Assembly: GCA_976226885.1 (NCBI GenBank)
Contig: OZ320315.1
Span: 36,766,001 to 36,830,000 of the forward strand
Direction of reading: 5' to 3'
DNA length: 64,000 nucleotides
Source: Iphione sp. A-MEVVRFRX5
Lineage: Eukaryota
The notes beneath the pieces were generated by a model. It searched no databases. It worked only from the letters and a program-made list of their open reading frames with translations, and was not told where the DNA came from. Below are positions 6,619 through 44,329 of this stretch, piece by piece. A program made the position numbers and the translations under genes. Numbering within the stretch: position 1 is the first letter of the stretch; each line of letters starts with the position of its first letter.

Positions 6619-7744
6619 GTAAGTTTTGAAAATTAAAAACTCTGTATTATTTTCAAGTCAGTATACATTACCCTACTAAATCACCTCGAATACTGTAACA
6701 CAACACAATTCAAGACAACCCAGGGTCCAGTTCGGTTGGTATTTACTGCTAATTAAACATACAAAGTGAAGCTGGCAGAGCAATTGACCCTTCACTTTCT
6801 TATTCTATCCACAAATCTACGATATCATACTAACACAAAAATTACTATTGACACTTAAGAAATAAGCTACTCAGCTGGTTTTTTTCCTGCTTTCTATGAT
6901 TGAATGAACACAACTGAATTCTCCGATCACCCGGTCCACGTGACCTTTCGCTGGTTACCGGTTGCGTCATTTTTCACCAGCGTATACGCTGTCCGACAAG
7001 TTATCGTTGGGCGTGGCGTAACTCATGTTGAAAACCGTAGATGGGCATTATTAAACTGTAATATGTGAGACCTTCCTGCATGATCTATCATGAATATATG
7101 TTTTTTGAAAAAAAAAAATCATGTACACCATTTTTAGGCAGCATTTGAAATTTAACGATGAATATGAAGCACATCACTCGTTGTTTATCCGCCGTTATGA
7201 CCGTTATTTAGTTAAAATGCACATTTTTCCATTAAATTGATGCCTTTCTTTTTTTTTATACATGATTTAGATAAATATCATGTACAACAATTTTTATTAG
7301 AATATTTCCGATCATCATGATAACTTTGAACATAACGGCCTATGTCATGACGATCCCATCCTCTTTTTGCTTTCCCGCCCCATATCTAGCGATGTTATCC
7401 AGCTCAATGTTTTATGTGATTTATTATTTTTTTTTATAGGCAAATGTGATATGTTAACTGTCATGAAAAATAAATAAAGCTTTTAGAACACCTTTTTGCA
7501 TTTTTTGGTGTTAACATGTAGAAATACCAATCTATAAATTTTTTTTTAAAAAGTCATATATCCAAGGAATCATATATATTCTACATACCCCTTTTTAAAG
7601 GTATACAAGATAAATTCTTGTTTTCATTGTTAATAATTATGTGTGTTTTGATGCCATTTCTTATCTTTTTTTTACTAATAAAACCTTCAAACCCTACTGC
7701 TGGCTCTGTGCTTTGTTTTTGAAAAAAAACTCAAACTGACAAGC

Positions 7745-10700
7745 ATGGATTCAAACTCTTCTGCAAGTTCCTCAATGTTCCAGAGGGCTCTGTTGTCTGA
7801 GCTTCCCAGTGACTTTGGGGAAACGTACTTGGCCAACCAGGGAACCCTCTTGCATAGGATGAATGCAAAGAAGTTTCAGAGAGGTGGGTATGTGGACAAT
7901 GTTGTCCTTGAGAAGATGGGTGCAGACTTCCAGGTGTCTGCCATATGCTACAGGAGCATGAAGAAGAAAGAGCCTCCCCAACGCATTAACTTTGACATCA
8001 TTGTTAAGGCTGCAGAAATTCAGGGAGCATTGTGCTCTTGTGTAGCAGGGTAAGTAGAAACCCTATCATGTAGATTTCATTGTCTTCCACAGTCATTTTA
8101 ATCCTAATTTGTTGAATGTTAATTCAAAATTAAGTCATGTAGCTTTTGTTATCGTGTCGACTTCTTAGGCTAATAGCCAATAAGTTTATTTTCTTAAATT
8201 TAGATATGTCATTTTGACTGTTTTCACTGAGCCTGTATTATTTCCTCACCTTGTATTTAAAGAAGTTAAATTGAAACTTGTCATCAGAGTAATATGATTC
8301 TTGCACATCAATAGATCAGGTAGACGTCTTCCTTGTTAACATTAGCATTATTCTGTTTAAAGACCTACTGTAATTTTCAAATCGTGTCACATTGTTAGTG
8401 TTATCAAGTAGAATTTCTGTGCTGTTGTTAAAACTGATTCATATCATGTAGATTTTTGTCACGACCACTCAGGATAACCCCCACTCGCATTTGAACAGAT
8501 TTTGTTGTCACGTAGGCTATCTACGCTCATTTGTAAACTGAAGTATGTCACGTAGACTTTTCTCACGGTAGTTAATGATTTCCCACACTCGTTTTTGAAC
8601 AGAGTTGATTTAAACTCGTACACACAGTGTAATGTTTCTCGTATATCATTAAGACTATCATGTAGACGCCTTGCCTCTTAACATTATCATTATTATTAAT
8701 GACAAAGTAATTTAATTTCCAAATCGTGTCACCTAGAATTTGTTGTCACGTAGACTATCTGCGCTCATTTTTAAACTGAAGTATGTCACGTAGACTTTTC
8801 TCACGGTAGTTAATGATATCCCGCACTAGTTTTTGAACAGAGTTGATTTAAACTCGTACACACAGTGTTATGTTTCTCGTATATCATTAAGACTATCATG
8901 TAGACGCCTTGCCTCTTAACATTATCATTAGTGAATGCATTGAGCTTATGAAACAAAATGAGAAACAGGCTTTCCAATATAACAATTCTTTAATTTCAAT
9001 CAGTGAAAGATTTCAAATGTCCATGGAAGGCGATGTACAACTGCAGAACTTGTGGATCTCTCTGAAGTATTTGGCAATATGTTGAACATAATGTGATGAT
9101 TTAGGCAACTATCAACAAACTGATAGCAGTTCACATTCTAAGTATTAAATTGATTTGATGATTTCAAAAAAGTAATATACAAAATCACAGACGGTCCTGG
9201 TATTAAATCATTTGTATGCATCACAGTGTTTTACAGCAATTTTAAATATATTGGACATACATATACTTGCTTATATAGCCATGTTGCTTCACAAATAATA
9301 ATTGAACATGCATTGTTCTTTAGACGTGCTGGGAACTGTTCCCACCTGCAAGCCGTAGTGTACACCTTGAGGGATTGGATGTTGAATGGCCTGAAAGAAG
9401 TCCCTGAAGCAGCAGCATGCACTTCTAGGCCCCAGCAATGGGGTAAGCCTTGGCGTAAGTCGGTTGGTCCTGCAGCCGCAGCCTCGTTGGTTTTCGCCAA
9501 CCCAACCAAGGAGAACCGAAAGAGGAAACCTCCAAAGGCAGAATTTCGTGACAACAGGTAATTTTTACACTTTCCTTACAGTGTCACTGTCTTAGTAATC
9601 TGTTAGACACATTTACCTTTCATGTTTATACCAAAATGGCAATATTTGTATTCGAATAATGTAATTTACATCAGATCTTGGAACCATATGCAGAGAATCT
9701 GTTTATAACATTACAAAAGTACTGTTTACTTGACTTGTAAAAATTTTGCATTTATCATGTTGAAACCAGTAAGCTACATTAGCAAAATAATACAATATGC
9801 TCAAAATTACATCAATTTTTTTTCCAGGTGTGTGGAACTCAAACAAGAACCCTTCGAGGTGCTACCAAACTCCATATTGCCGGTGTCTTACTTGACCAGA
9901 GGTCCTCATCACCTTATGCAGTCTGATTTTTTTGGCATGATTCCTCAGAACTGTGCCTTGTCCTGCTTTGTAAGTATAATATATACAGGATTCATAATTG
10001 GTACTCACTGAAATGACTCTGGACATCCAATGTTTCTTACATTTAATTTGATACACTTTTTGAATTTTGAATCTAATTTGTAACATCAAAGTTCCACTAT
10101 TCAGGTTATGAAACATTTCTTACAAATTTTGTCATTTTAGTCTACCTTTAAACCACAATGAAAGTATCTAATCTAGTAGTGGATATTTTGGGGTGCATGC
10201 TCCCACATTTGGCTGTGAATGTGACTACACTGGCATGGTCATTTATTGGCAATTTGCATTACCTGCGTGTTGTAAGGCACATACTGTGGTATTCTCCTAT
10301 AGATGCTATGGACTTAGCGATAATATTTGCTTCAAGGATAATCTGCAGGTGGCTAAAGGATACATGGTGACTAAACATGTCAACATGATTTTTATAACAG
10401 TGTGTCATTTTGCGTCACTGTCTTTAATGGCTGCCTAACACGTCATTAACTGTGACTCATCGCTGCGCACTGCACGTTCTAACTGTAGTCGTTTTGCATT
10501 TTCCATTTTACCTTGTAATCCATCAAGTGGACACCCACCGATCATGGTGAAAAGGTGCAAATGGGGTACGTGCCTAAGGAATAACCTGCACGTTCTAACT
10601 GTAGTCGTCTTGCATTTTCCCTTTTACCTCGTAAAAGGCACCCACCGATCATGGTGAAAAGGTGCAAATGGGGTACGTGCCTAAGGAATAACCTGCAGGT

Positions 10701-13700
10701 TCTAACTGTAGTCATCTTGCATTTTCCCTTTTACCTCGTAATCCATCAAGTGGACACCCAGCGATCATGGTGAAAAGGTGCAAATGGGGTACGTGCCCAC
10801 AGGATAACCGTTAGCCACATCGCATGAAAGGCGGGATAAAATTTATTCCGTTCCCAAAACCCGAGACTCCGCTATGAAATTTTAATTTAAAATTGTATTT
10901 CAGACATATAGCCTTACCTAAGTCCATTATGCTCTGTAGGCGACCTCACAGCACGAATGTCAGAAATGCCAGTTTACATAATGTCATATACATTTGCCCT
11001 ACCTAAGTCCCTTATGCTCTGTAGGCGACCTCACAGCACAAATGTTAGAAATGCCAGTTTACATAATGTCATATACATTCGCCCTACCTAAGTCCATTAT
11101 GCTCTGTAGGCGACCTCACCACACAAATGTTACAAATGCCATTTTACATGATGTCATGTACATTCGCCCTACCTAAGTCCATTATGCTCTGTAGGCGACC
11201 TCACAGCACAAATGTTAGAAATGCCTGTTTACATGATGTCATGTACATTCGCCCTACCTAAGTCCATTATGCTCTGTAGGCGACCTCACAGCACAAATGT
11301 TAGAAATGCCAGTTTACATGATGTCATGTACATTCGCCCTACCTAAGTCCATTATGCTCTGTAGGCGACCTCACAGCACAAATGTTACAAATGCCAGTTT
11401 ACATGATGTCATCTACATTCGCCCTACCTAAGTCCCTTATGCTCTGTAGGCGACCTCACAGCACAAATGTTAGAAATGCCAGTTTACATAATGTCATATA
11501 CATTCGCCCTACCTAAGTCCATTATGCTCTGTAGGCGACCTCACCGCACAAATGTTACAAATGCCATTTTACATGATGTCATGTACATTCGCCCTACCTA
11601 AGTCCATTATGCTCTGTAGGCGACCTCACAGCACAAATGTTAGAAATGCCAGTTTACATGATGTCATGTACATTCGCCCTACCTAAGTCCATTATGCTCT
11701 GTAGGCGACCTCACCGCACAAATGTTAGAAATGCCAGTTTACATGATGTCATGTACATTCGCCCTACCTAAGTCCATTATGCTCTGTAGGCGACCTCACA
11801 GCACAAATGTTACAAATGCCAGTTTACATGATGTCATGTACATATACCGTATGCCCATATATATTTGTCATTTTTGAAATGGGTCTTGGCTATTTAAGGA
11901 ATTGACTGTTTGAGGCAGAAGGAACAAAATTTATGATAATGTAAATATAAGAAATGAAATGAATGCATTTGCCCACATGACACAAACATATCAATTTAAA
12001 TGAAATATACCAACACCACACCGGAATACACACTCAAATTATATTGTGATTAAATCAAGCAGTACTTGTGATAACAAAGGAAGAAATAGTGCAATTTATT
12101 ATTTATCCTTTGAACGCAAAGTATAATCTTGAAAATTAACTAGTGTGCAGCAAACAATCCAAATTTGGTCTAAAATTGTAACCAAGGAGTTGTCTAAACC
12201 ACGGGACAAAATTTTGAAATTTTTGATACGCGCTATTGCTCGCTCAACATGGATCGGGGGCGTGCAATGCGCTGCATTAACAGAACATCGCACTCCGCCA
12301 TCTGTCCATGGGAAGGAGCAAATGGCGGTAGGTTTAGTTTCAAACCAAGACTCTCAATTTCCGGTGAAATTGTGAACCCCTTATCTGCCATCAAACCGTC
12401 GCCAGGAAGAATATACTTCAAATTTAGGAGTCTTTGGATCAAATCATAAAACTTACATTCTTTTGTAAGCTTTTTGTCCGAAATAGAACCTGAATATAAA
12501 GCGGAAGCAAAAATAATGCATCCTCTGGGGTCACATGCAACAAGTGCTTTCAGAGTATTTGCTGATTTATAATCCCAATAACACTGGCTCTGTACCAACA
12601 ATGAACTGGGCTTTTGAATTTTCATTTCCGTGCCATCTAAAATTGCCAGTGTATTCGGGAATTCTTTCCTATATTCTGCAGGCATTTGCTTGATAATTTG
12701 TTCACGGTGTGGCCATTGAATTGTGCATCCTAACCTTATAAACATATAATGAATCATGTCCCAGAATAATTCACCTGCATCTTGTGGAGAAAGTCCAAAA
12801 CGAAAGGCCAAATCTTTGAAATGTAAACCTTTTCTGAGTCTTGATAAGACTAAAAATAATTTATCTTTGGCTGCCATTGCTTGCACAGCAGTTAATCTCC
12901 TGGTGGCATTATACACATGTTCAGTGGTGTTGGTTGGAAATAAATAATTAAAAAGGAACATAAATTGGTAATAACTGAACCCAGTGTAATATTTAAGTAA
13001 ATCAGGAATTTTACTATTAAGAACAGAATCAAAAGAATGAACCACAGTTTTCTGCCTCAACAGTTTTACCTCCGCAGTTAACTTCTTATTCTCATCTTGA
13101 GAGTCTAAAAGATCTCTCACTAGCTCCTCCTTAACTGTTGTAGTCTTGATGAGCTCTCGCTGCATTTTGTTCTTCACTGCCTTAAGCATTTCGTATTCCC
13201 CTGGGTTTATCCCTGTAAAATGAAATGAAGCATCCATTTTTTTTAATTTCTAAATTTAGTTTAGTTGATGAGACAGTAGTAAGGCAGTTGGATGTGAAAT
13301 TCTGTGTATGGTTAATTGGGAGTGGATATTTTTGAATGGAACATATGGTAGAAGACCCTGGGTAGATTAAGTGGGTAACAGGGTAGATCTACATATGGAT
13401 GGTGGTAGATTCAGTGGGTATTAGGGTAGGTGTTCATACAGTGGATGGTAGGGTGGCTGTAGTGTAAAAAGAAATGTAGTGTGTCTTCCAAAGTAGGTGC
13501 ATGTTTCATGTTCGTATTGGGGATAGAACTTTTGAAAAGAAAATCATATTACATACAATTAGGCATATATATATATTTCTCTTTTAATAGGACCATATCA
13601 TCAAGGAGAGTCAACTCCCTATCGTACGTCACGCCACCTGTGAAGGCACCATCTTCCCTAAGGTCTCACCGGTGGCTTTGCCTGAGGTTGATGCTACAGT

Positions 13701-14358
13701 ATGGGAAGGGCTGGGTTTAACTCAGACCCAGGCCATACAAGTTGAGAAGGAGACCGTGCAGCAGACTGCATCTAAGAGGTGGTGGGAATTGAGAAAGAAT
13801 CGCATAACTGCATCGAAATTTGGGCTAATCATGCGGTGGAAGGCTAAGCCTACCGAAGCCTTCATCAAGTCGATAGTTCATGAGAGGCACTTCACCTCCG
13901 AGGCTACTACCTACGGTCGGCAAAATGAGGATAAGGCGAAATCTGCTTATCTGGAAAAGTTCCCTGGACACCATCTACATTCCATTGGCCTGGTAATCAA
14001 CCCGATGTGCCCTTTCCTTGCCGCGACACCTGATGCCAAGGTGTGTAGGGAGGATGGGTGCTCCATAATGGAGGTGAAGTGCCCCTTCTCTGCACGGGAT
14101 TGCACCATCAAAGAGGCCATGTCGTTAAAGGACTTCTGCTTAGAGTCTGTTGGAGGAGTGCCACACTTGAAAGAAAACCACCAATACTGGTTCCAGGTGC
14201 AAGGGCAGCTTATGGTGACTGGTGCCAGGCGCTGCATCTTTGTTGTGTATACTAAGAAGGACATACACGTGGAGGAGATTGAAGTTGACAGCGTAGCGTG
14301 CCAGGAGATGTTTGGAGTGCTATATAATTTCTATGTGAAGTACATGGCACAGGATTGA
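7745..14358 (+). CDS. SWIM zinc finger + YqaJ/lambda-exonuclease-like PD-(D/E)XK nuclease, 482 aa, apparently intact
   Basis: Exons 7745-8049, 9324-9557, 9828-9969, 13591-14358 have GT-AG ends, match in phase (2,2,0) and total 1449 nt. The SWIM motif CSCVAGRAGNCSH spans the first junction and is followed by CTSRPQQWGKP. Nuclease motifs RITASKFG, YGRQNE, FLAATPDA, MEVKCPF and YWFQVQGQL lie in exon 4. Confidence 0.88.
8501..8931. repeat. Tandem duplication, ~240-bp unit x2, in intron 1 of the SWIM-YqaJ gene
   Basis: The block tttgttgtcacgtag...ttaacattatcatta occurs at ~8501 and ~8738, nearly identical. Confidence 0.85.
10366..10875 (+). pseudogene. Truncated inverted copy of the THAP-transposase upstream region and first-exon start, internally triplicated (~110-bp unit x3)
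   Basis: Aligns by eye with the reverse complement of ~28250-28530. Each unit carries ATGGTGAAAAGGTGCAAATGGGGTACGTGCC (MVKRCKWGTC). The last unit continues into a HRMKGGIKFIPFPKP-like sequence and then breaks off. Confidence 0.8.
10911..11843. repeat. Minisatellite, 85-bp unit x ~11
   Basis: Unit gccctacctaagtccattatgctctgtaggcgacctcacagcacaaatgttagaaatgccagtttacatgatgtcatgtacattc recurs every 85 bp with few substitutions. Confidence 0.95.
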
Positions 14359-17300
14359 GATGGTAGCTGATGAGCAGGATTAAGAAAAAAAAAATAAAAC
14401 TTACATGTCTCAATTGTTGTGGATGCTTGATCCTTTGTTTCAACAGCAGGCTTAATGTTATGTAATCTGTGAAGTATAGAAGGAAGCATTTTGAGTACAT
14501 TTTTACATAAAGCATTTCTTTCAGTCACCACATGAAATCATTTAAGGAATCTAATTTTCAAATCATCAATTTAAATGTTAGTGTGTTAGATATATTAGTA
14601 AATTATTAATGCATACTACACCGGTAACAGGTTGAGATACAGAAAATTGAACTCAAAGTTCAACCAGGTGTTGATCCTCTGAAAACATGCAAAGCAAAAA
14701 TATGTACCTTCAAGTATTCACCATATGCTCATTTTAAGAACTTAAACATTATGTAAATCATATCCAGATGCATGATTAAAAAAAACAGCTGTAAACTTTC
14801 ATTATATGTGACCAAATTTAATAACTTAAGTGAATCTTGTCATTACTTCCTTTATATTGATGCAATGAAATCTATCCACCAGTCAGGTGTCTACATGAGT
14901 TACATTAATATCGCATGAATCAAGGAGAATGTAATTATACCTGTCAGTGAACAGACATTATGCTAAACCATGAGCATCTGACACAATATTTAATATTGCC
15001 TGACAACATGGATGTGCAATTTTTCATAACTGAACAGGGCAAGTGACTTATAACACAAAGATTATCCCACGACTTAGAAAACCCTGTCTACCGAGTCAGC
15101 GTTTGTAATTTTGTTTCATGTTGACATAAGTTTTTAATGGACGTAGACATCACATTTTTACCTCATTTTAAGAATGACATAAGTCATAAGATTTTAGGGC
15201 ATGTGAATTCCGACTCATTATACAACTGGTAATATNNNNNNNNNNNNNNNNNNNNNNNNNNNNNNNNNNNNNNNNNNNNNNNNNNNNNNNNNNNNNNNNN
15301 NNNNNNNNNNNNNNNNNNNNNNNNNNNNNNNNNNNNNNNNNNNNNNNNNNNNNNNNNNNNNNNNNNNNNNNNNNNNNNNNNNNNNNNNNNNNNNNNNNNN
15401 NNNNNNNNNNNNNNNNNNNNNNNNNNNNNNNNNNNNNNNNNNNNNNNNTCTGAAGTGTGTATAAAGAAGGACACAGTGAAGGAAGGAGGGAGGGCAGGAA
15501 GGAGGGAGGGAGGAGACAGAGACAGAAGGATAGACCATGAGAAATACCATGGATCACTTACCCCCCAGAGCTGAAGCCTGAATGTGCTGCCAAAAAGTAG
15601 CCCAACAGCTGACAACCCACAATCGCTGTCAGTGTCGATCGCATTTGTTTACAAAATGAACTATCACGTAAACGGGAATTTCGACTACAGTTACAAGTAG
15701 AAGTATACATGATCTACACAACAATGAATGCAAGAAATTATAATCATGATTGATATGAAGCATTTCCAGCATGATGTATACAAAAAAAGGCAAGACGACT
15801 CGAAGAAAATTCACCCGTGCGATCCATTTGTCAGACCCGCGTAGAAAGATTGTACGGTCAAGAAGTGAGTATATGCATTATACCAAATCATGAATTATTG
15901 TTCACATTTATCATGTTGAAAGGGTGTAATATTAGAATGCTATCACAATACATGCATCATGTCGAACTAAACTCATCTGAGTGACCCATAAGCTATGACA
16001 CAGAAGTGTTCCAGTTTCTATGTCAAAGGTCCCGCAGGGGGTCATAACAAGATGGCGGATAGCCTCTGCTTTTCGCGCTTCGAATTGTACTATCAATTTC
16101 ACTCAAATTTAACAGTTTACTTATCATTCGCACATACTTTCAACATGATAAATACACAATCCATATAAATCATGTATATGGTAGCAATCAAACATATTCT
16201 AATGTCCTTCTCGAAAATATTCGATTGTATGTAGTGGAACGGCCGAAATAATTTATTTAGGTCAAGCCATCGACTGGGCTACACCACTAACTTATTGTCA
16301 GAGAATGTTCATCATGTACAATAAAATAAATAGTTCTCCAAATTGTCAGTCTCCGCCAATTTTATACATGAGGAATACATATCGCTTTCTATCATGCTGA
16401 TTCAGTCCTCTAAAGTACGATTTTCAGTGCTATGTACATTCATACTTTGATGTCCGCTGGAACCGGTTAACTCAATAAATAGGTCGAATCACTGAATAGC
16501 TTGAGCCCGCGCTGCAGTACATAAACATACTGCATCCTCGTAGGTCATGTAGACACATAGAAACGTACAACGTAAAACTATCAAAGCTACACGAGTCAAG
16601 TAGATTAAAAAAATGTTTGATGAATTTTTAGTATACTCCTATGCCGGGATACTGTCAAAATAGTTGAGTTCAACAATTTCTGTATATAGGTGCAACTGTA
16701 GGTGCAAGTATGTGCAAAGGTTTATGAATCCACATGATTTTACATGTAAGTTTAGTTTTGTGTATGTGCTTACATTTATGCACATCTGTGTGCTCTCCCT
16801 TAATCCCTCTCTCTCTCTATCTTCTCCATTCAACAGAATTGTTTTTCTTCTTTTAGCCGCAACTGCCTATCATGCCCATATGTATCTATGTAACTCAACA
16901 TTCATATATTTTTACCATAGGTCAACATGCCTCCCAAAAAGTTTCTCAGCATTAGGGAAAAAAAAGCTGCACATAGTGCAGACCAGCAGCGGTATATAAA
17001 AAAAGTAATGGAGAGAGACCCGGGCTTCCGCGAAAAAGAACGCCAAAGAAGCAAGTTACACTATGAGAGAAACAGAGAAGCCATCTTAGCGAAAAGAAAA
17101 GAAAAACGGGACAGATTGGTACGAGAGGCACGTGCTGTGCCTATTGTAATTGAGGACAGTGGTAAGTATTAGAAAAGTAACTGTTTGTCAGTTCAATTAA
17201 GTGATATTACTAGATTCAAATGGTAATTTTCAGTAGTCCTACAAGCCTAAAATATATTTTATTGAATGCTGTTATGTCATTATTATGCTACAACTGTCTT

Positions 17301-20300
17301 CATTGGAAACCACAATATATAGGGCCTATTTTCCATGCCTTTTCTTCCTGATTAATGAGCCATAAATGTAATTCTAAAGATGATTTCAAATTGTCATATA
17401 TAGAAAGGTATTCATCTTTGGAACATGTATATGGAAAATATTGACTAATAACAGTAACTTTTTATCCCATCACTAGACTCAGACGAAGACCTAAGGCTGG
17501 CAGAGTTCATTGCCTTTGGGCAAGTACGCGCAGGTGAGTATCTTGGACATTGGGTTAAGTATCAGGATGATTAGGGTGCTCATTTAGCATTTGGTGACAC
17601 AAGCAAATTTCTATATTTTATTGTTCTACCGTACATGCAAGGCAGACTGGTAAGAAGATTGCTTTCATCAAGTATGAAGGGGCCACTAAGAGCAACAATA
17701 TCAATTTCATACAACTAGTTATATACACAGAAGTTAATGTGTATTTGAATAATCTGCTTGAAAAAAATAACTAATCCTAGCTAGAGAATGCAGGTTTTGC
17801 AAATAAAAATTAACCTGATCACAGCAGTTAAAAACAAAGAAAATGAAAACATGTAAGAGGCAAGGGCTAAGGTCAAGATTATGACAAGACTTGTATAATT
17901 TTCAAGCTATCACAGCCGGCAGACTGATTTGTCAAGTAAAACTATATTGAAAATTAAGTTACAGTCACTAAAATTTGACAATTGGATTACATGCTTGATA
18001 GTAAACTTGATGTTGTAAAGTTTACTGTGATATTGATTTTCATTGAAATATTCTATTTTCACAGAGCAACATCTACAACAAAATGACCTACCCAACATAG
18101 AGCCTCAAGAATTGCCTGCTTTACAAGATCACCAAAGACAGGACCGGCCAAATCCCCAAAAGAAGAAAGAAACAGCTCGGCTCAAAGACCTGTCTGCCAG
18201 AAGACCGGTGCAAGGCAGGACCGAGAATAGTGCCCAAGACAAACCAATCGATTTCACACAGGATGAAAGATTGTAAGTATATAAATTTAATACAGGTATA
18301 TAAAATGATAAGAGTGGGGAGATAGGTCAGTGTTAGTGCACTAGTCCACTGACTGATAGGTCACATTTTCATTGCCAGGCCTGGGACTCTTCATCAAGAT
18401 GAGAGAGATTTACCGTATTCCCAAACCATATTGGTCAATAAATCTTAGGAAGGCTGAGAGTGTCTAGGATTCTGTTAACTATGCACTAAAACATCTCAGA
18501 AGACTTATTCATAAAGAGTAGGAGGCAATCCTGTGTATTCTTGCCTCTCATTTCTCAACAGTACATTGGAAGTATGGTTTCATTCTGTCCAAAGGGCTTG
18601 ACATTGGGTTGGTGTCCCCAAACGTGCATAGACAATTTATAGTATCACTAAATTGTACAGTGAATGCACATTAATGTAAGGAAGTTAGAGTGTAAACCGA
18701 TGCAAAGGAGCAAAAGCCAGGTTAGCCCATTTCTATCAAGATGCATGAATATTTATCAAATGTAAAGGTAAATGTAGAACAAACAAAATATAAATATTGC
18801 AGTAGAATGTCAGCATATTTAATAGATTGTGTTCTTGTACTGAGAAGACGAATGAGTCTGCTACATTATAGTTTAGTGCAAATATGGTGAGAGGTAAATA
18901 ATTACATAATATTATTACTCATCTTGTTCTTTCTTTCAGGGTTGTCCAGGATGCAATATCACAGTTTTTCTGAAGGAGGGACAACGTAAAGAGCATGACA
19001 GAAGACATAATTTATTATAAAGTGTGTTTTATATTGTTAAAATGACTATTTATTCCAGTTGTACATATTTGTAATATAGACATAACATTTATTTAAATCA
19101 TGGGTAAGGATAGGGAATCAGCTTAAGTGGGGGGGGGGGAAATTGTACATTTTGTCATTTAGGGAATAGTAATTGACATATTCATTTACTCCAGTTGTAC
19201 ATATTTGTAATATAGACATAACATTTATTTAAATCATGGGTAAGGATAGAGAACCAGCTTAAGTGGGGGGGGGGAATTTGTACATTTTTGTCATTTAGGA
19301 AATAGTCATTGGCATATTCATTTACTCCAGTTGAAGATATTTTTATATACATTAAGTTTATGTCAATCAGGGTATGGATAGGAAACATGATTAACTAGGG
19401 AAGGGGAATAGGACTTTTATAGTAACTCTTGTATAACCAAGAAAAGGGAGATGCACCTTCGTGGATCATTTAACCTGTATGCAAGTAATTAAAGTTTGTT
19501 AAATGCAATGTATTGTTTGTTATTTTTCTGTAATACAGTATTAATTTACATGATAAAAGACATCAAGAAGTAAATGAAAGTAAAGTCTGGCTAGTTACTT
19601 TCTACTTCATTTCAATGTTAATAGGCAATAAATATGAACTCATAAGAAAAAGAAGGAAATACTTCCTAAGAATATATATAACACTTACCTTACATTTCTA
19701 TGTCTACTTGTTACTTTTCCATCCGATACATGGTAATCCATAATATATCTCAGGTCTATATGTATCCAACTGGAAATGAATATAAAAGGAAATATCAGAA
19801 AATTGCACAACTGTTGAGCAAAGAAGATATTCATATCTAATAAGAGAGAAAAATAGGCAACAGTGGGGAGAAGAGGACACCATAAGAAGATAGGAACTCT
19901 TGTCGATTTTAGCTTTTTTTATTGACTATGCAGGAAAAGGAGTCAGGGATAGAGGGAGGGACCGAGAAAGATAAAGAGAGAAGGAGGGAGACAGAGGAAT
20001 AGGGAGAGAAAGGCAGAGACAGGCAGCAAGAGATAGTGGGAGAGACAGAAGAGAAAGAGTGATGGAGAGAGAGGGAGAGGATGGGAGAGGGTGAGAGAGA
20101 GGGAAAGAGGGTGAGAGGGAGNNNNNNNNNNNNNNNNNNNNNNNNNNNNNNNNNNNNNNNNNNNNNNNNNNNNNNNNNNNNNNNNNNNNNNNNNNNNNNN
20201 NNNNNNNNNNNNNNNNNNNNNNNNNNNNNNNNNNNNNNNNNNNNNNNNNNNNNNNNNNNNNNNNNNNNNNNNNNNNNNNNNNNNNNNNNNNNNNNNNNNN

Positions 20301-23300
20301 NNNNNNNNNNNNNNNNNNNNNNNNNNNNNNNNNNNNNNNNNNNNNNNNNNNNNNNNNNNNNNNNNNNNNNNNNNNNNNNNNNNNNNNNNNNNNNNNNNNN
20401 NNNNNNNNNNNNNNNNNNNNNNNNNNNNNNNNNNNNNNNNNNNNNNNNNNNNNNNNNNNNNNNNNNNNNNNNNNNNNNNNNNNNNNNNNNNNNNNNNNNN
20501 NGAGGAAGGGAGGAAGAGAGGGTGAGAGGGAGGGAGGTAGAGAGGTGAGAGGGAGGGAGGGAGGGAGAGAGAAATGGAGAGACAGAGGGAGAGCGAGGGA
20601 GTGAGAGAGGGAGGGAGAGAGAGGGAGTGAGAGGAAGGGAGGGAGAGAGAAAGGGAGAGAGGGAATGAAAGAGGGAGAGAGAGAGGGAGTGAGAGGAAGG
20701 GAGGAAGAGAGGGTGAGAGGGAGNNNNNNNNNNNNNNNNNNNNNNNNNNNNNNNNNNNNNNNNNNNNNNNNNNNNNNNNNNNNNNNNNNNNNNNNNNNNN
20801 NNNNNNNNNNNNNNNNNNNNNNNNNNNNNNNNNNNNNNNNNNNNNNNNNNNNNNNNNNNNNNNNNNNNNNNNNNNNNNAAAGAGAGAGGGAGTGAAAGAG
20901 GGTGAGAGTGAGAGAGGGTGAGAGGGAGGGATGGATACCAGTCTAGCTGTCGACATCAAGTACCTACTGTTAAATCATACCCTTTTTTAAATAAAAAAAA
21001 AACATACTCATGGCTGACGATCTATCGGCATTCGTTGTCATACACCACATTCAAAATAGGTACATGTTGCTGCACTGCTTTTTTTTGCTGCAGAACTACT
21101 TCCTGTTCCTCCTTCCCTCCAAACTGACAAGTAAGTGCTTCACAGTGTCTGCATAAAGATATGAAATCTGTGCATATGATCTCACTATGGCAAGTACAGG
21201 CAAGGTATATGATGAAGACACATTTAATCTACCACTTGTCATGTTGATCCGCAATATGCGCTACTACATGCTTCAGTAGTAGAGTTCGAAGTCTACCACT
21301 TGTCATGTTGATCCGCAATATGCGCTACTACATGCTTCAGTAGTAGAGTTTGAAGTCTACCACTTGTCATGTTGATCCGCAATATGCGCTACTACATGCT
21401 TCAGTAGACGTACGTTTAACCTTTCTGCACAAAGTCGAATATGTCATATTCACAACAATGATTCGCATCTTTTCAACATTAAACATGAGGTACATTTAAC
21501 CTTTCTGCGCAAAGTCGAATATGTCATATTCACAACAATGATTCGCATCTTTTCAACATTAAACATGACGTACGTTTAACCTTTCTGCGCAAAGTCGAAT
21601 ATGTCATATTCTCAACAATGACTCGCATCTTTTCAACATTAAACATGACATACGTTTAACCTTTCTGCACAAAGTCGAACATGACATATCCAAAACAATG
21701 ATTCGCATCTTTTCAACATTAAACATGACGTACGTTTAACCTTTCTGCACAAAGTCGAACATGACATATCCAAAACAATGATTCGCATCTTTTCAACATT
21801 AAACATGACGTACATTTAACCTTTCTGCACAAAGTCGAACATGACATATCCAAAACAATGATTCGCATCTTTTCAACATAGAACATGACGTACGTTTAAC
21901 CTTTCTGCACAAAGTCGAACATGACATATCCAAAACAATGATTCGCATCTTTTCAACATAGAACATGACGTACGTTTAACCTTTCTGCACAAAGTCGAAC
22001 ATGACATATCCAAAACAATGATTCGCATCTTTTCAACATTAAACATGACGTATGTTTAACCTTTCTGCACAAAGTCGAATAAGTCATATTCTCAACAATG
22101 ATTTGCATCTTTTCAACATAGAACATGACGTACGTTTAATCTTTCTGCGCAAAGTCAAACATGACATATCATAAACAATGATTTGCATCTTTTCAACAAA
22201 GAATGTAATGTACAATTAACCTTTTCAGCTGGTAAACCGCAGTCATAATAGATTCGAAAATAATAATCAAAATATATAGCCTGGAATACTGTTCACATGT
22301 ATTGCAAAAAGGTGTGCTAAATGTTTGAACATTTAATTCACAGATATTGCACGAGGTCATCACACAAAGAAAAAAAAAATCCAGCATGGACAGACCAGTA
22401 AGTGGGTTGGATGTATAGAGCATGTAACAACTGTTTCAAATTATTATGCTATGATGCAATTCATACTAGTATACATTAATGAAATATTCACCAATTTTTA
22501 TCACAAATGCAGGGAGAATGAAAGGTAAAAAAAAAAGGCTATGCAATGCTGTGGTAGGCGTACTGACCTGAAGTTTTATTCATTTCTTTTTCAGCTGATG
22601 GCACTGCACCTGGGAGTAATGACAAGTGAGTAATCATTAAAATTGCCTGCTTACCATTTATCACATTTAGGCAACATCTGTAATATACGAAACGAATGTT
22701 CAGACCGAATGCAAGAAGATGTAAAATCAGCCAGGGATAATTGACTACAATCACTACTTCTTTCTTTTTGAAGCATTTATCTACAGGTGTAGGGCCTGTT
22801 CCTGGGTTCATCCCTTGTCCCAGTTCTATATGGGTGGGATCCTTCTGTTGGCACGCCACACCTACAGGACATATGTGGTAAGGCTCTCAAATGTAAGCTA
22901 CCTAAAAAAACTACACTGCTTACGTTACCATGGAACAGTATTACAGTGGGAACTTCCATTGCACTTAGGATATGTGCAGATACAAAAACATGCATTCTTC
23001 AGAAAAACCGAATGAGTTGTATAAAAAAAAAGAAAAGCTAACATATAATAACAATAACCTATGCTTTCTTTTTGCAGGGTCCCGTGTATCCAAGATGCCT
23101 TCACGTAAGTTAGCTATTAAACAACTAAAATGTAACATCTTATGGAAAGAGCTATTTATATCACTCAAGAAAAAAAATTTACTCAATGTAAGACTTATAA
23201 TCGTGACATCTATTCTTCCGCAGTGCCAGATGGAATGGGCAATAATACTGTCCGGTGGTCAGTAACATAGAAAGCATAACATGTTTAAAGATCATGTTCA

Positions 23301-26300
23301 CTGGTTATTTTTTTACAATTTGCAAATGGTGCAAGTTTTTGTTTTCCTGTTTCTTTTGCAAGTATTGTACAACACACACTTGATAAGTCCATATTCAAGT
23401 TATTATTATTATGGAAATCAGACATTCAAGGAGTTCAAAAGCTGCAGGATCATGATCTAAAACGTAAGCCTGTTATTGGGTCCTGTATATTTAAAGGCTT
23501 TGTTAATAAGGTTATGTTTTTTGAAAGTTTGTTGAGTTCTTGTTGGTTTTCAACCCCAAATAATGTAGAGCAGAAGACTATGTGGAAGGAAGACCGACAC
23601 CATAATTCCAACATCCAATGGCTTTAATCAGTATAGAACCGTTGCAGCTTCTACAAGCTTGCAAGCTTTCAAACCTCTCAAGGGTCTTCCTCAAGCTCGT
23701 GGGCAAAGTAGAACAAAGTAAAATAATGTCTCATTATCGCAATCCGGACCAATAATGACAGATATTTAATTGCTAAATTCTCTGTCATGTCCTATTACTA
23801 TTCGTTGCAGAACTTCTTCAATATACATGTAGGGACGCAACTATATCGCATTAACAATTGTCAAACCTTCGAAAAATAGAACTTATATGCTTCATTCACT
23901 TTCTGTTTCAGTTGAAATCCTTGTCTGAGAAGACGGTCCTCCTGCCGCACCACGTCTTTTATAACTTTACGTAACAAAGTATTTAGAAAGGAAACACATT
24001 TATAGCCTCTTTATTTCATTTTATTTTTAGCGGCCGTCAATAAAGTGTAGAGGACAAAAATTGCGTTATTGTTTATGTCTGCTGTAGAGGGTTATATGAT
24101 ATTATGGCGACTACAGGCCTTAGCATGAGTTTTGCTGTATTGCACTAAACCATCATGCAATACACTTCCATGGGAAAAAAAGGCAAGGAAGGGTTGGGGG
24201 GGGGCAAGTAGCAGGGTACCACACGGGCATAAAACAAGTAATATTTCCATGACTACCCCAAATGAACGGCTTTTGGAAAGGCCGTGCAACAATAACTCCT
24301 CAGGCTAGCCTGTGGCCGCCACCACCGACCCTACCAAAAAGAAGTATCCAGGCTCCAATCATTGACACCCATCTTGCAATGCTATACTCTAAGATGGAGC
24401 GACAGAGTACATGAAGAAATGAAGGTACGGATGAGCAATAGGGTATCATTTATGTGTGCAAACCATCAGGCCCAGACTATCTATTAAACACATACATGGT
24501 AGCAACCAAGAACAAAAGCTTGAGACTGGTAGAAAAGATAAAAAATGCACAACAGGAAATAACCGTAATAAGAGAAATATATTTACTTACCACAGAATGT
24601 ATGGCAAAATGTACATGTCAAGCATAGAGGGAATAATACTTTCCTAAAAAGTAAACTAGTCTTTAATTCATTTCAATACAAAAGCTGCAGAAATAACAGT
24701 GCATTTGACCCACAAAAATCACATCAAACTTAGTACATGAGATTAGTGATGTTAAGTAAATAAAACGGGAAAAAAAGACAAATGGAATTGGCAAGAACTT
24801 CAACAAATATCATACCCCAAAAAAACTTAATACTAAGCAAAACCAAAAATATACTTACATACTCAAATCTGTTCCATCCATTCCATGAGGCTCATTTAAT
24901 GGTCTACAAATGAAACAATATTGTGAAGGATCAACAATCATTAATAGATATACATTCAAGACACCTACAAATAAAAACAGCTTCCATTTTAAAAAAAGTG
25001 ACAACAAATACACACACAAAAAAAAGAATAGCCAGTAACATTAACAGATACATTCAATGATATAAACTACTTCTATTTCTGCACTTACATTTCAAAGTCT
25101 GAGCCATCAACTATAATTTCCTCTGGATCTGTATGGATGTGGTCATCAACAGGACTGCAATCACAGAACATATCTCACTATGAAAATATGGCAGTTGATT
25201 ATGTTAAGACAACCAGTATAACATTCTGAGCGGACTTCAAGTTTAATACATACATAGGTAGTTGACATGGTAACAGGCAGTAAAAGATACCTGTGTAAAG
25301 CATTGATAGGAATAAAAAGAATATTAACAAGAGTGTGGACCTATGAGGTCTATTGTCCCCCNNNNNNNNNNNNNNNNNNNNNNNNNNNNNNNNNNNNNNN
25401 NNNNNNNNNNNNNNNNNNNNNNNNNNNNNNNNNNNNNNNNNNNNNNNNNNNNNNNNNNNNNNNNNNNNNNNNNNNNNNNNNNNNNNNNNNNNNNNNNNNT
25501 TTACAAACACCTTGATTGGCACCTTGTTTTGGGGTTGGTTGGCTAGACTTGTTGAAGTCCTTCAGGTTTACAACTCTTGGTTCTGCATGACTGAGCAAAG
25601 CACCCTCAGTTCTACCTCACTGAGCACCAGACCTTTACAAACCCTCTGTTCTGCATGAGTGAGCACAGCTCCCATGGTTCTGCCTCACTAAGCACCAGAC
25701 TGTTACAAGCTGAAAGTGGTAGAGGGGAGATATTGGTGAGTGTGTATGTGCATGGTCAGACCTAGGAACCCCTGAACCAGGTATGTATGTTTGTAGGTGT
25801 GTTAGCAAAAGAATAAGATTAGTACAAATTTCACCTTCAAAAAACTTGGATTACTACCAGAATTACCCAGTGCCATGGGGCCATATATACCAATATCATA
25901 TATTAAAATCAGTTCTTTTCAGTGAAGGGTTTGAGACTTATAAGACCCACAAGAGTGTGACGGATGGTCGGGACACCAGCCTGTAGCATTCCTAATGTCC
26001 CCCCTTCTATGAGGCAGGGGACAATAAAATGTTTCAACACAACCACATCACATCGCATCTCTATACTCACATTTCTAAATGCATCTCTTCCTCGTCAAGT
26101 TCATCACTTGCAGACGGATCGGGGGGGACTGCAAATGAAACATATAGAGAAAAACTTACATACAAGCCAAGAATGAATCCTGATGTACAATTGACACCAA
26201 CACCCAATGACATAGCACATTGAAATGGCTAACCATTAACACACCAACATAAACCTCTGGCAGAAATATTAAGGTAAAAATATTTGGCTGTAAACAAATT

Positions 26301-28342
26301 AACACATGTAGCATTGGAGAATCTTCGGCTCAAAAAAAAACAAATACATACTCTTAATTCATAACCAACCCATTCATGGGAATATGTCCTACATTGACCA
26401 AATAGCAGCAACAACATGAGGTGACAAAAAATATTTGACCAAAATTACATCAAAAGATTGATGGGAATGAAGAGAATTAATCGAAAATGTCAACGCAACT
26501 ACCACACATCACTATACTCACATTTCAAAATTCATGCCATCAATTATGACATCCTCATCAAGTTCCTCATCAAGTTCCTCATCAAGTTCAGCACTTGCCA
26601 ACGGATCAGGGGGTCTGTAAATGAAAAATATATTGAAATGTTCAAATACAAACAAAGAATAAGTATTCATGAACCATTAGCACATAAAACCCAAAAAGAT
26701 ATGTCAATAAAATGAAAGACCACTTAGAGACAAACATACATTTCTGGCAGAAATAATGAAGTACATATATTGTTGCTAAAAACTATCAGCATGACCAACT
26801 ATATACAGTTCTCTTTCACATCCAAAATTATATATTATTTAATAAAATTTTGAAAATGAACAAAACAATAAACAGCTTTTCCATATGTAGAAAGTAGCAT
26901 GTCTAAATAACAATCAGAAGTAATTTAAAATGTATGTTATGCAAAAAACAACAGAAAAGTACATACACTTCAGCAGAAGCATCTTCAGAAACTAGTTCAG
27001 TTTCCGGTCGCCATCCTCTACAGAATAAAAGGAAAATTACATGAATGATTGTATTATATTAACAAAAAAAAACACTTGCTTTAAGCAAATGAATCAGGCA
27101 GTAAAAAAAGAACTAAAGAAATACAGTACATCTACAAAAAAAAAAATAAATAGTCTGTGAACCAATTTCAATGTGCAATAAAACATGATGACTGATATAT
27201 TCATGAAATCCCACGATAGATATAATACATTTGCATGGAGTACAGCCGGGATTACACATATCACACAAAATAACTACTTAAACTACACTAACCGGGCTTC
27301 ACACTCAGCTACGGCCTTTGCCGTCGCGGGGATTGGGTCTGGGTGGTCATCGGTCGGGCCGTGCCCACCAACAAAATGCTGTTAAAGAAAAAAGGTGAAA
27401 TTGTAAAGCTTATCTAACCATAATATTATTGCACACAAAAATTTTCTGACCCTTAGCATCATGTAGATTAGGTAAAATGACCTACACTAATCAATTAAAA
27501 ATTTCTGCTTGATAAACCTTCGAAAATACTTATGGAATTGAGTACAATATAAACATTTCCATGTTAAGACCACGACGAATAAATATGGAATTGATAAATG
27601 AATAGCAAGTACTTAAGCAGACTGGACCACTTGACAACATGATAAACACCTACAGTATTTGGCCCTTCATTACTTCATCAGGCAGACAAAACGTACAAAA
27701 AATGATTATAGAGTCACATTGCTTTGTTAAATAACTAGAATCTTACAGTAAGGGGGCATCAGTAAGACATTTTCACCATGACGTATTAAAGTTAAACAGA
27801 CACATGCAGAGAACATAGCCGACTTCACCGCTTGACAACATGATAAACGCCTACAGTATTTGGCCCTTCATTAGTTCATCAGGCAGAAAAAAACGTAAAA
27901 AAAAAATAAATGTGCCTTACTGACATCAGTACACATAAACATAATAATTGAGTTGACATACATTCAAATAAATTTGACCATCAGATGCAATCGACTCATT
28001 ATCCCCCCCCCTTCCAAAAAAATGGCGCCTACGTTCCACCGTGACATTTAGGAAATTAATCCACATGATATACAGACATCAAAAATAGGAAAAACATACA
28101 TTATGCATATCTATGTCATGTATAAAATCATGTACACTTACCACGGAACAAACAAAACGATGACGATCAATATCATCAACAACAAGATTATCCCGCCAAC
28201 GACCACACAGACGAATCCACCAGCGACATTTCCGTAGCTGAGTCTTCGGTTTGGGGAACGGAATAAATTCTATCCCGCCTTTCATGCGATCCGGATAACG
28301 GTTATCCCGTGGGCACGTACCCCATTCGCATAATTTCACCAT
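12099..28342 (-). CDS. THAP-HTH-DDE transposase (PIF/Harbinger/ISL2EU type), ~569 aa, with one 1-nt frameshift near the C-terminus
   Basis: Phase-consistent minus-strand exons: 28342-28142 (THAP start, MVKLCEWGTC...FIPFPKP...W...CGR...VCSV), 27378-27293 (HFVGGHGPTDDHPDPIPAT), 27017-26967, 26614-26522, 25154-25089, 24903-24859, 24643-24591 (ends phase 1) and 13212-12099 (phase-1 acceptor). The last exon holds the HTH (LSRLRKGLHFKDLAFRFGLS) and the catalytic ILDGTE / MADKGF / HVERAI motifs. The join across the 11.4-kb intron is inferred from phase and domain logic. Confidence 0.75.
16927..18973 (+). CDS. Orphan 177-aa protein with a basic, helical N-terminus
   Basis: Exons 16927-17161, 17477-17533, 18065-18272, 18940-18973 have canonical GT-AG ends and phases 1,1,2; total 534 nt ending in TGA. 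N-terminus MPPKKFLSIREKKAAH...EKERQRSKLHYERNREAILAKRKEKR. Confidence 0.7.
19048..19335. repeat. Tandem duplication, ~136-bp unit x2 plus a partial third copy
   Basis: attta(t/c)tccagttgtacatatttgtaatatagacataac... at ~19048 and ~19184, each copy containing a G-run. Confidence 0.8.
19940..20930. repeat. GA-rich purine simple-repeat tract interrupted by two assembly gaps
   Basis: Degenerate (GA/GGA/GAGG)n sequence flanking N runs at ~20122-20501 and ~20724-20878. Confidence 0.9.
21228..21407. repeat. Tandem repeat, ~64-bp unit x3
   Basis: tctaccacttgtcatgttgatccgcaatatgcgctactacatgcttcagtag occurs three times. Confidence 0.9.
21407..22197. repeat. Minisatellite, 80-bp unit x10
   Basis: ctttctgc(a/g)caaagtc recurs at exactly 80-bp spacing from 21421 to 22141. 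Confidence 0.95.
22595..23265 (+). CDS. 3' micro-exons of an orphan C4 zinc-finger-like protein; 5' end unresolved
   Basis: Exons 22595-22625, 22787-22877, 23078-23104, 23224-23265 splice in phase to ...DGTAPGSNDKCRACSWVHPLSQFYMGGILLLARHTYRTYVGPVYPRCLHCQMEWAIILSGGQ*, with two CxxC pairs, the second built across a junction. Another plus-strand micro-exon lies at 21094-21130. Confidence 0.55.
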
Positions 28343-28692
28343 GACTGATGGTTGTCAACTTGATAGATTACGGGGTAACAGACAAAATGCAAGGCGCCTA
28401 CAGACCGAACGTGCAGTGCGCGGCTATGAGTCACGGAGACAGAGTCAAGGACGTGTCGGACAGCCGTTAAGGACGGTGACGTAAAATGACCCGCTGTTAT
28501 AAAAATCATGTTGCCGCGGGTAGTCACGACGTAAAAGTTGCGCGGAGCTACAAAACTACCGCGTCGTATCTGGTGGTAGCGATCGGTGAGCGCCTTGGTA
28601 ATTCTTTTAATAAATTCAGAAGAAATGTAGTTTTTGCATTCCCTACAAAATAACACCAAAACCAATGATACTCGATGAGTCAACCCCCTTAA

Positions 28693-29146: not shown

Positions 29147-30781
29147 TTACTTATTCATGAACTGGATATTAAAAGTACAATTGTGGAGATTAGCTCCAGC
29201 CAAAATTCCCTTTACTGCTGATTCCGCCATTTGGACGAAATTTACATGCGTTTGACTTCCTGTCACGACATTCTCCTTTTGGCTTTGGACGATATCAGAA
29301 TCATCGGAATACGGCAAAGTGGCTGGCAAGAGACTAACATCATCCTCATCTTTTATGAGGTTAGAACCATAATTTGACAGAATATTAGACATTTCCATGC
29401 GTACCTTTTTAGTGGCATGTGACAAATATGGTTTCAGAGCAGATACATTTCGGTGCCCTGTTACTTTTTGTATGTTATGGACCGGAATACCCGCTTGATC
29501 TAAAGTGCTAACAGCGGTATGGCGGAGACAATGATTCGTGTAAACTCTTGAAAGTCCCGCCTCTTTTGAAATTTCCGACATCATACCGTATAATTTATTA
29601 GCCTCCATGCACATATTATCGTACCAACAATCAGAACTGTAAATATAGTTCCTGCGAGGGCGCTGAAAAAAAGCATCGCAATACGGATTTATATTTGCGA
29701 GATATTTGGATAACAAAAGAATCGCGCTTCAGTTCTCTTAATCCCTCTCTACCCGGCGCCCGAAATGCAACATAATGTTGAAGAAATTTTGTCGCATCAA
29801 CCCCAACGGACTGTCTGTGAATACCTTCCTATACAACTGATTTACATCTTCTGGCTCTATTTGCGCTTTATGGCTTGTTTTGTCAGCTCCTTCTCGTTTT
29901 ATCTTACTGACGTACCCCTGGTAAGCGAGGTTGGCCTGTCTGAACTTGCTATCGGTCATGATGTTAAAAGTTGCATTTACGGGGGGGGGAAGCCAGGTAA
30001 CATTGCAAGCCGCAACACAAATTCTTAATCGCTGATTTCAAATATAATTCATTGTTTGTTGTGCGTATCACAGTATAGAACTTTTCTAAGCTAGACGTTA
30101 GGGCTTCCTCACTGTAGTTTTCAAAGTCCGGCTGCTCTTTGACCTTGATTAGCCAGTCTGCAAGGAACGAATGAATTTTTTGAATATTTTCTCCCGGTTT
30201 TGGAGTCTGTATGTGATACCTGTAGCTTATGAAGACATCGGTATTTGTCTGAAAAAATGTCGATTTTACTTACCATGGAAGAGTTTAGTTGCCCATTTTG
30301 TTTGGAATTTGGTCGACTTAGACAGTCTGTTGTTCTTCATTGCATCGATCTCGCTTTGGGCTGGCATGTAGAAGCGCTTCTGGTTCTCGCTGTCATCTGT
30401 ACAAATGAAAATATGTGTAGATTTTAGTGTAATGTCCTTCGCATTTACTTTTTCCTATACAGTACAATTTGCACAAATTCGTCTCTTTTTTGTATCGGAA
30501 ATTGAATTATTTCTGTCAACCTTACCATTCTTGGGTGCATCCTCGGTGGAATCGTCTTCTTGCTCTTCCTCGTCAAAGTCCAAATTTATGTCGAAACTAG
30601 CAATGTCTGATGCTTCTATTTTCTTCATCTGGTAAGGTGCAGTCGTTGTTTTTTCTGACGTCGCAATAACCCTGATGTCGTATAAGTGGATGTTGCTTCC
30701 TGCTATGAAATATATCTTTTCAATCTGCGAAACTTTGTCATTGTATAGCATGTAATCGCCCACCTCGTAGGCCTCTGCCAT
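29147..30781 (-). pseudogene. Crypton-type tyrosine recombinase (DUF3504-like), 3 exons, disrupted
   Basis: Exons 30781-30526, 30396-30274 and 30157-29147 splice in phase 1. Motifs: KFQTKWATKLF, LEKFYTVIR...YLKSAIKNL, HFGRRGREGLREL (after a frameshift), AFFQRP, YTNHCLRHTAVSTL, VTGHRNVSALKPY. There is a +1 shift in a C-run (~29985), a shift at ~29750 and an apparent internal deletion at ~29715. Confidence 0.88.
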
Positions 30782-43930: not shown

Positions 43931-44329
43931 GGCAGGGGGTAGGCATCAACCTTGGTCTGTTGCTTTAGCTTCCGGTAGTCGACACAGAAGCTTCACCACC
44001 GACATCCCCCACAGATGCAGCTTGCCCAGCACGCTTTCTGATCTGGGCAACATACTCACCTATGGGCATGTTTACTTCAACTTCCGGAGGATCTTTTTAT
44101 AACAACTTCATCGGCAAAACTGCATAATGCCTGAATACTAGCTTGTAAGGAGAAACTTATGTTGTAGATTGGGGGGGTTAGCCGATAAGCATGCATAATA
44201 AATGGTATTATTTGATCCCATTCGTTGTGTTTTTCTTCTGCTGGGGCTTTCAATAACCGGTTAACTGTTCAAAAACTTCTCTCAATGAAGTTGTCACTTT
44301 GTGGATGTAACAGTGTAGTTAATTTGGTC

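Follow-up and report, generated by a model that had tools for sequence, protein, structure and literature searches.

A mobile 21.7-kb ISL2EU-type DNA transposon family in Iphione sp. with a predicted family-specific gene and a probable captured gene fragment

Results

The window analysed here is a stretch of 64,000 nucleotides from Iphione sp. A-MEVVRFRX5 (GenBank assembly GCA_976226885.1, contig OZ320315.1, positions 36,766,001 to 36,830,000 of the forward strand), numbered from its first letter. It is eukaryotic and rich in transposable elements (TEs), and from 6920 to 28589 it holds, in one piece, a repeat unit of 21,670 bp that copy alignments delimit as a whole ISL2EU-type element, present here as a defective copy. 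Inside this element lie a plus-strand gene with SWIM and YqaJ domains, the minus-strand exons of a transposase, and two further plus-strand spliced units: a gene for a small basic protein and a set of exons for a cysteine-rich peptide, referred to below as the C4 unit.

A DNA search of the organism's own 1.18-Gb genome with window 12233-14358 returned four further copies (A to D) at 98-99% identity, which are spread over two chromosome-scale contigs at distances of tens of Mb. We aligned the 30 kb around each of them to the window. Homology begins at window 6917 in all four, and it ends at 28589 in both of the copies whose right end was covered (B and C). Identity between copies is 95-99% over the whole element and the flanks are unrelated, including those of copies C and D, which are almost identical internally. 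The element is bounded by terminal inverted repeats (TIRs) of 11 bp, the left one at 6920-6930 on the plus strand, where TCTCCGATC(G/A)C pairs with the reverse complement of the right end TCACCGATCGC, and the right one at 28579-28589 on the minus strand, placed by comparing the ends among copies. The two repeats match at 10 of 11 positions in the family and at 9 of 11 in the window copy. A-AT precedes TCTCCGATC in all five copies, with window 6918-6919 as the left AT of a target-site duplication in an A/AT/T target, and AT-T follows GGTGA at the right end of copies B and C. The ends of these two copies read A-AT/TCTCCGATCGC... and ...GCGATCGGTGA/AT-T. Because five copies have common ends and unrelated flanks, with AT duplications in two of them, these data demonstrate that a unit of about 22 kb has been mobile as one piece, at at least five unrelated sites. 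A first-pass annotation of the window had proposed an element of roughly this size, and the common ends of the copies bear it out at 21,670 bp. The window copy was inserted into a repeat: a ~135-bp high-copy sequence at 6782-6916 (270 first-look candidates) abuts the insertion point. One other copy of this sequence, at C10:44311006-44311139, is 90% identical to it. The right flank of the window copy opens with GCGCCTTGGTA (28590-28600), ATT coming only after those 11 bases; this odd junction could be filler DNA or a later change.

The SWIM-YqaJ gene occupies the left half of the element on the plus strand. Its first exon (7745-8049; ATG at 7745, ending ...CSCVAG) is an intact open reading frame (ORF) in five copies and is followed by a GTAAGT donor. 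The second exon (9324-9557) fits it in phase, completes the CxC...CxH SWIM signature, and is among the best-conserved stretches between copies (98-100%). The last exon (13591-14358) encodes a YqaJ or lambda-exonuclease-like domain (PF09588, E 1.4e-14 at 13672-14358), is open in five of five copies, and has a ratio of nonsynonymous to synonymous differences (pN/pS) of 0.18 among copies. Some 145 paralogues of SWIM exon 1 are found genome-wide, upstream of YqaJ matches on the same strand; because the paralogues pair with YqaJ matches in this way, we assign 7745-8049 and 9324-9557 as the 5' exons of the YqaJ gene. Copy A (L002:2111 to L003:3126) has an insertion of ~11 kb in the last YqaJ codons, at window 14337-14341. 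This insertion has TG...CA ends, a 4-5-bp duplication and three minus-strand ORFs (719, 395 and 866 aa), and looks like a long terminal repeat (LTR) retroelement.

Antisense within the SWIM-YqaJ gene lies the last exon of the transposase (12102-13249, minus strand), assigned by Pfam, with a coiled coil, HTH_Tnp_4 and DDE_Tnp_4. The minus-strand ORF at 12233-13237 matches PF13359 (E 4e-25) and PF13613 (E 2e-8), and the C-terminal DDE piece with the E motif is found at 12102-12353 on the same strand (Pfam E 1.6e-10). The two are in different frames in the window copy, where a private 1-bp deletion near 12254 shifts the frame ahead of the catalytic E motif; the deleted base is present in all four other copies. 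An intact DDE ORF of 379 aa is found in copies B, C and D, and the ORF has a stop in copy A. Since its DDE exon is frameshifted, the window copy is, as judged from its reading frame, dead.

The N-terminal part of the transposase is encoded at the far right of the element. Exon 1 (28142-28342, minus strand; ATG at 28342), identified by homology and open in four copies, encodes the first part of a THAP domain: it is 50-54% identical to residues 1-70 of THAP-DDE proteins of oyster, scallop and loach (E 5e-15 to 5e-19), and Pfam scores THAP on this exon alone at E 0.032. Exon 2 (27293-27378, minus strand; HFVGGHGPTDDHPDPIPA...) completes the THAP C2CH signature, joining exon 1 in phase 0 to give C-S-V-H and a C-x4-C...C-x2-H arrangement. 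It is 58% identical to residues 68-86 of the oyster THAP-DDE protein, and its region has the fewest amino-acid changes relative to a further locus, H. An HFFGRGG frame at ~28.0 kb was considered for the second THAP half and rejected, as its poly-G run differs in length among copies; this run, in the first THAP intron (window 27990-28010, minus strand), has 9 to at least 13 bases. A search for an AVPTIF-type motif as the second THAP half gave no match.

The annotated oyster, scallop and loach THAP-DDE proteins are colinear with 28342-28145, 27381-27325 and 13132-12108, and in every ISL2EU family of this genome a THAP exon lies beyond YqaJ. On these two grounds a single 16-kb transposase gene (28342 to 12102), whose last intron would measure ~12 kb, is likely. 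The YqaJ exon and both extra units fall within this span. Candidate linker exons in between carry an acidic module. Module c (25089-25154; ...IIVDGSDFE) and module a (26522-26614), both on the minus strand, have AG/GT borders and fit THAP exon 2 in phase, and a third copy of the module (26071-26128, minus strand) is out of phase, at a C7 run. Left unspliced, each module runs into an immediate stop.

An AT target duplication within an A/AT/T target is a hallmark of ISL2EU (Han et al. 2015, PMC4482050), and it is seen in copies B and C. Consistent with this assignment, the element encodes DDE_Tnp_4 and HTH_Tnp_4, an N-terminal THAP domain that is probably joined to the DDE exon in one gene, and YqaJ as the second gene; THAP, HTH and DDE together make up the usual ISL2EU ORF1 (Han 2015, PMC4482050). 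Published ISL2EU TIRs measure 6-259 bp and usually start with GG (Han 2015, PMC4482050). The TIR here has 11 bp and one mismatch and starts with TC rather than GG, a departure from what is, by the word "usually", a soft criterion.

Between the YqaJ stop (14358) and ~24.6 kb we found two plus-strand spliced units antisense to the DDE exon. The first-pass annotation had described both as genes; the units themselves stand, but we read only the first of them as a gene. That unit, the basic-protein gene, has a first exon at 16927-17161 (MPPKK..., 78 codons plus 1 nt; donor G/GTAAGT) and a second at 18065-18276 (acceptor ttttcacag/; ending ...FTQDERL and a stop). With canonical splice sites and matching phases, the predicted product has 148 aa in place of the 177 aa first given. 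Both exons have only four matches in the genome, all within the element and in four of four complete copies, where both are open and the start, stop and length are identical. Neither exon has an indel, and the surrounding inner region shows ~7-9 indel-like events per kb. Exon 2 is open in copy B despite 17% divergence. In exon 1 of copy C, 29 substitutions cause 12 residue changes, versus 20.6 ± 2.1 when the same changes are shuffled (P 1e-4), and pN/pS among copies is 0.28 for exon 1 and 0.45 for exon 2. Because it is found nowhere else in the genome, is open in the complete copies and is constrained in exon 1, we take the predicted basic gene as a real, family-specific, element-borne gene. 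Since it travels only with the element and its first exon is constrained, an accessory role is plausible, and from composition alone one might guess at a nuclear or DNA-binding helper.

The C4 unit comprises four plus-strand exons: Z (22595-22625, 31 nt), whose AG/GT borders are kept in seven paralogues and which here contains an ATG at 22598; A (22774-22877; FIYRCRACSWVHPLS...), with 15 invariant residues across ten paralogues, whose introns are unalignable; B (23078-23104; GPVYPRCLH), placed by comparison with paralogues; and C (23224-23265; CQMEWAIILSGGQ, then a stop), 83-92% identical in paralogues. Joined, they would encode a peptide of ~68 aa from ATG 22598 with a CRAC...CLHC, CxxC...CxxC pattern. 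Downstream, a conserved island with AATAAA (23885-24048, plus strand) is 71% identical to a paralogous locus at C10:78.40 Mb, which has no ISL2EU gene within 25 kb, and this island is probably the 3' untranslated region and poly(A) site of the unit. For exon A there are ~20 paralogues, 46-67% identical and alike in exon spacing (loci at C11:31695233 and C26:7854438 among them), and by this conservation it clearly belongs to a family of coding exons.

These paralogues lie in other repeats, and none is near any YqaJ, SWIM or THAP match, so we rejected the idea that C4 is a general ISL2EU gene. We also rejected C4 as an independent nested TE, there being no bounding inverted repeats in 20879-24700. 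In locus L031, exon A is preceded by an open frame of 140 aa, which we likewise rejected as coding, since the frame crosses the acceptor site. In the paralogues exon Z is internal and lacks an ATG; upstream exons of the family were not found. What the element holds is an exon-intron fragment with paralogues outside, relative to which it is incomplete. Because it is the 3' end of a dispersed family and its exon Z is internal in the paralogues, the C4 unit looks captured: it is most likely a transduplicated 3' gene fragment that gained an in-frame ATG. Locus E on contig C11, an 83%-identical fragment, is the only other DNA-level copy and could represent either the donor or an old relative of the element. 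The changes in exon A relative to locus E are mostly synonymous, and in copy C invariant residues of exon A have been replaced (G to W, V to E). The C4 fragment may or may not still make a peptide.

We next compared divergence between the copies across the element. The nested exons (16927-17161, 18065-18276 and 22774-22877) differ from the window by 10.6% in copy B and 7.7% in copy C, versus 2.8% and 3.6%, respectively, in the non-repetitive non-coding background (P 1e-20 and 7e-7). Core exons diverge below this background. The divergent patches end at exon borders. All substitution types are present, and RNA editing and CpG decay were rejected as causes on that ground. Copy C has a B-like exon 1 and a window-like exon 2, indicating that the copies are mosaics, and the assembly holds no donor paralogue for the divergent exons. 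Synonymous divergence of ~0.3 cannot arise from positive selection alone.

Most of the extra 14 kb consists of satellite, an interspersed repeat and gaps. The interspersed repeat, at 18291-18624 (~330 bp; 3390 first-look candidates genome-wide at 76-79% identity), resembles a short interspersed element (SINE) or a miniature inverted-repeat TE, and is an old nested insertion common to all copies. A purine-rich low-complexity array with two assembly gaps spans 19934-20900, 64-bp and 80-bp tandem arrays span 21228-22198, and the interval also holds 136-bp arrays. Runs of N at 15236-15448, 20122-20501 and 20724-20878 fall in arrays that are tandem or of low complexity, no proposed exon being closer than 1.4 kb, and by their alignment coordinates the other copies keep one order and orientation on either side of each run. 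The arrays at the gaps differ in length between copies; because the flank-to-flank distance over the first gap is 688-1235 bp in other copies versus 213 N in the window, gap lengths are estimates only. To the left of the DDE exon, 10440-10880 contains, on the plus strand, the THAP exon-1 region three times over in inverted orientation, as 107-bp units that have decayed and contain stop codons and which form with 28230-28533 an internal inverted repeat 17 kb apart, and 10911-11843 is an 85-bp satellite of 11 units. Just outside the right end, at 29147-29716 on the minus strand, Pfam identifies a separate tyrosine-recombinase fragment (Phage_integrase and DUF3504, Crypton-like). LTR-retroelement pieces (integrase, RNase H and aspartic protease) lie on the minus strand at window 42057-46941.

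The crossed order of SWIM exon, antisense DDE, YqaJ and antisense THAP is found in every ISL2EU family of this genome. A second giant family, at C1:21280965-21305217, C19:52116784-52141035, contig C4:117875501-117899750 and C1:131691139-131715389, has SWIM, DDE, YqaJ and THAP matches at identical spacing over 24.25 kb in four places. By their hit coordinates, several other families span 14-24 kb and compact ones 9-11 kb. Compared with the compact families, the present one has the same layout, with DDE inside the SWIM-YqaJ gene and YqaJ between THAP and DDE, but is twice as long and has additional coding units. None of the other large or compact families holds a match to the basic gene or to a C4 exon. 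Because other families also span up to 24 kb, great length through expansion of the stretch between THAP and DDE is characteristic of the ISL2EU elements in this genome, and the cargo of basic gene and C4 unit is specific to the present family. A different element in L013-L015 (C11:93522000-93551999), at 20343-21564, has SWIM, SWIM and DDE on the same strand and does not follow the crossed layout.

Discussion

Collectively, these data lead us to favour, with moderate confidence, the view that the element belongs to a recently active ISL2EU (PHIS superfamily) cut-and-paste family that has grown to 21.7 kb, with intron cargo that includes the basic gene and the captured C4 fragment. A cut-and-paste enzyme requires only the two ends of its element, and for this reason material landing inside is carried along. 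The ~12-kb last intron of the transposase would then have become a dumping ground for insertions, in which satellites, the SINE-like repeat, the two-exon basic gene and the 3' end of a C4 gene (four exons and poly(A) site) could each have been acquired, the last of these perhaps from a dispersed family of host genes or genes of another TE. The first-pass annotation had spoken of four genes and had suggested that the extra ones could be accessory factors (DNA binding, anti-silencing) rather than captured debris. The basic gene travels only with the element, is present in four of four complete copies and plausibly has an accessory role. "Four-gene" is generous, and C4 is a 3' fragment that looks captured and has unlinked paralogues.

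Several observations weigh against this account. At the ends of the element, the right flank of the window copy lacks the matching AT and has GCGCC instead, our alignments stopped short of the right end of copy A and at 14497 in copy D, and no empty site can be shown; the left flank of copy B is unique over its last 100 bp. In the transposase, we found no junction that would carry the reading frame of the THAP or acidic exons on into the DDE exon, and the placement of the extra units inside its last intron, as first annotated, has the colinear homologues in its favour and this missing junction against it. For the extra units, protein searches, made exon by exon, returned little. Pfam found no family for the basic exons and no match for the C4 exons; a word search with basic exon 1 gave no match, and an Atlas search with the same exon gave only small viral "hypothetical" look-alikes. 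Atlas likewise gave nothing for the C4 exons, and a profile of C4 exon A run against 1.84 billion proteins found no relative, only two weak repetitive matches. The nested exons are two to four times more divergent than non-coding DNA, which simple purifying selection does not predict. Finally, constraint is significant in basic exon 1 (P 1e-4, copy C) but not in exon 2, where the 44 changes in copy B do not differ from chance (P 0.21).

The most serious alternative, though to our mind a rather unlikely one, is that this is an ordinary two-gene ISL2EU element that has become bloated, both extra sets of ORFs being non-functional and the size coming from satellites and nested repeats. The lack of homologues or domains for either unit would fit such an element, as would the residue changes in basic exon 2, which are about as numerous as chance predicts, the loss of invariant residues from C4 exon A in copy C, the fact that no part of the element diverges faster than the nested exons, and the large share of tandem repeat, SINE-like repeat and gap in 14359-28140. 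Such an element would not, however, be expected to show far fewer residue changes in basic exon 1 than chance allows, nor a basic gene that keeps its start and stop and acquires no stop or indel in three independent comparisons, nor mostly synonymous changes between C4 exon A and locus E.

A second alternative concerns the intron. THAP (with the acidic exons) and HTH-DDE could be separate genes, with the extra units lying intergenically between the 3' end of YqaJ and a small THAP gene. The DDE exon has an ATG of its own (13237), its 379-aa ORF is complete in three copies (B, C and D), and some published ISL2EU transposases are HTH and DDE only, at 330-353 aa (Han 2015, PMC4482050); moreover, splicing the acidic exons to either candidate acceptor of the DDE exon would break the phase, and unspliced they hit a stop at once. 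By contrast, THAP, linker and DDE form a single chain in the proteins from oyster, scallop and loach, which are colinear with the exons here, every family of the genome has its THAP exon past YqaJ and on the strand of DDE, and the fused ORF1 is the usual one (PMC4482050). We therefore consider separate genes unlikely. An origin of the five copies in segmental duplications of some complex locus, rather than in transposition of 22 kb, is extremely unlikely and was rejected on ends and flanks: the near identity of copies C and D and the missing right-hand AT of the window copy would suit it, but the start base is the same in five of five copies and the end base in the three that were covered, the flanks are unrelated even for C and D, two copies have inverted-repeat ends with the AT signature of an A/AT/T target, and tens of Mb separate the copies, which are shared between two contigs.

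Returning to the cargo-carrying ISL2EU family, its size sets it apart from published members. The 25 ISL2EU families surveyed measure 746-7117 bp, with at most two ORFs and a mean of about 4.8 kb for autonomous elements (Han et al. 2015, PMC4482050). At 21,670 bp the present element is three times as long as the longest of these, in line with the initial claim that it is much larger than known two-gene elements, size being a descriptive and not a defining property. Relative to the surveyed elements (PMC4482050) it thus differs in length (21.7 kb versus 0.7-7.1 kb) and in TIRs that start with TC instead of the usual GG, and it adds two spliced plus-strand units, satellites and a SINE-like repeat in the putative transposase intron. 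A 2019 review of giant eukaryotic transposons mentions neither Harbinger nor ISL2EU. Among known systems, Pack-MULEs and other transduplicating DNA transposons, which capture gene fragments (reviewed in PMC6431247), are comparable to the carrier of C4, a set of exons, introns and the 3' end of an outside gene family between TIRs; the present carrier differs in belonging to another superfamily, in having all the autonomous core genes (intact in copies B and C), and in containing one fragment only. The Myb-like second protein of PIF/Harbinger elements offers a possible analogy to the basic protein, both being small element-encoded proteins besides the transposase, and would suggest a helper in DNA binding or nuclear import, but the basic protein has no Myb/SANT domain and no sequence similarity to it. 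Teratorn, the piggyBac-herpesvirus fusion of teleosts (41-182 kb), is another case of a DDE transposase moving a very large unit. It belongs to a different superfamily and has a viral cargo of ~90 genes, whereas the cargo here is small and mostly repeats.

A bolder idea is that the giant intron acts as a cargo bay whose element-borne genes evolve fast under selection. The exons of the basic gene and the C4 unit, for all their divergence, stay open, in copies that are mosaics of deeply diverged exon "alleles", a pattern that one would expect of an accessory factor engaged in an arms race with silencing by the host. We think this quite unlikely. If true, homogenisation would affect the remainder of the element and leave the cargo genes diverse, and the family would be natural proof that a PHIS-type transposase moves more than 20 kb.

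Descriptions of ISL2EU elements present them as compact transposons with two genes. The presence of several recently mobile families of 15-24 kb in one genome implies that the ISL2EU transposase system can move large units. PHIS transposases (Spy) are under development for gene transfer, an application limited by the size of the cargo (PMC11304231), and the mobility of large units matters for tools of this type. The exon-restricted divergence between copies provides a concrete pattern for testing selection on transposon-borne accessory proteins. For the family itself, the element offers a clean case of an animal DNA transposon gaining coding units, one a predicted family-specific gene and the other, most likely, a captured fragment.

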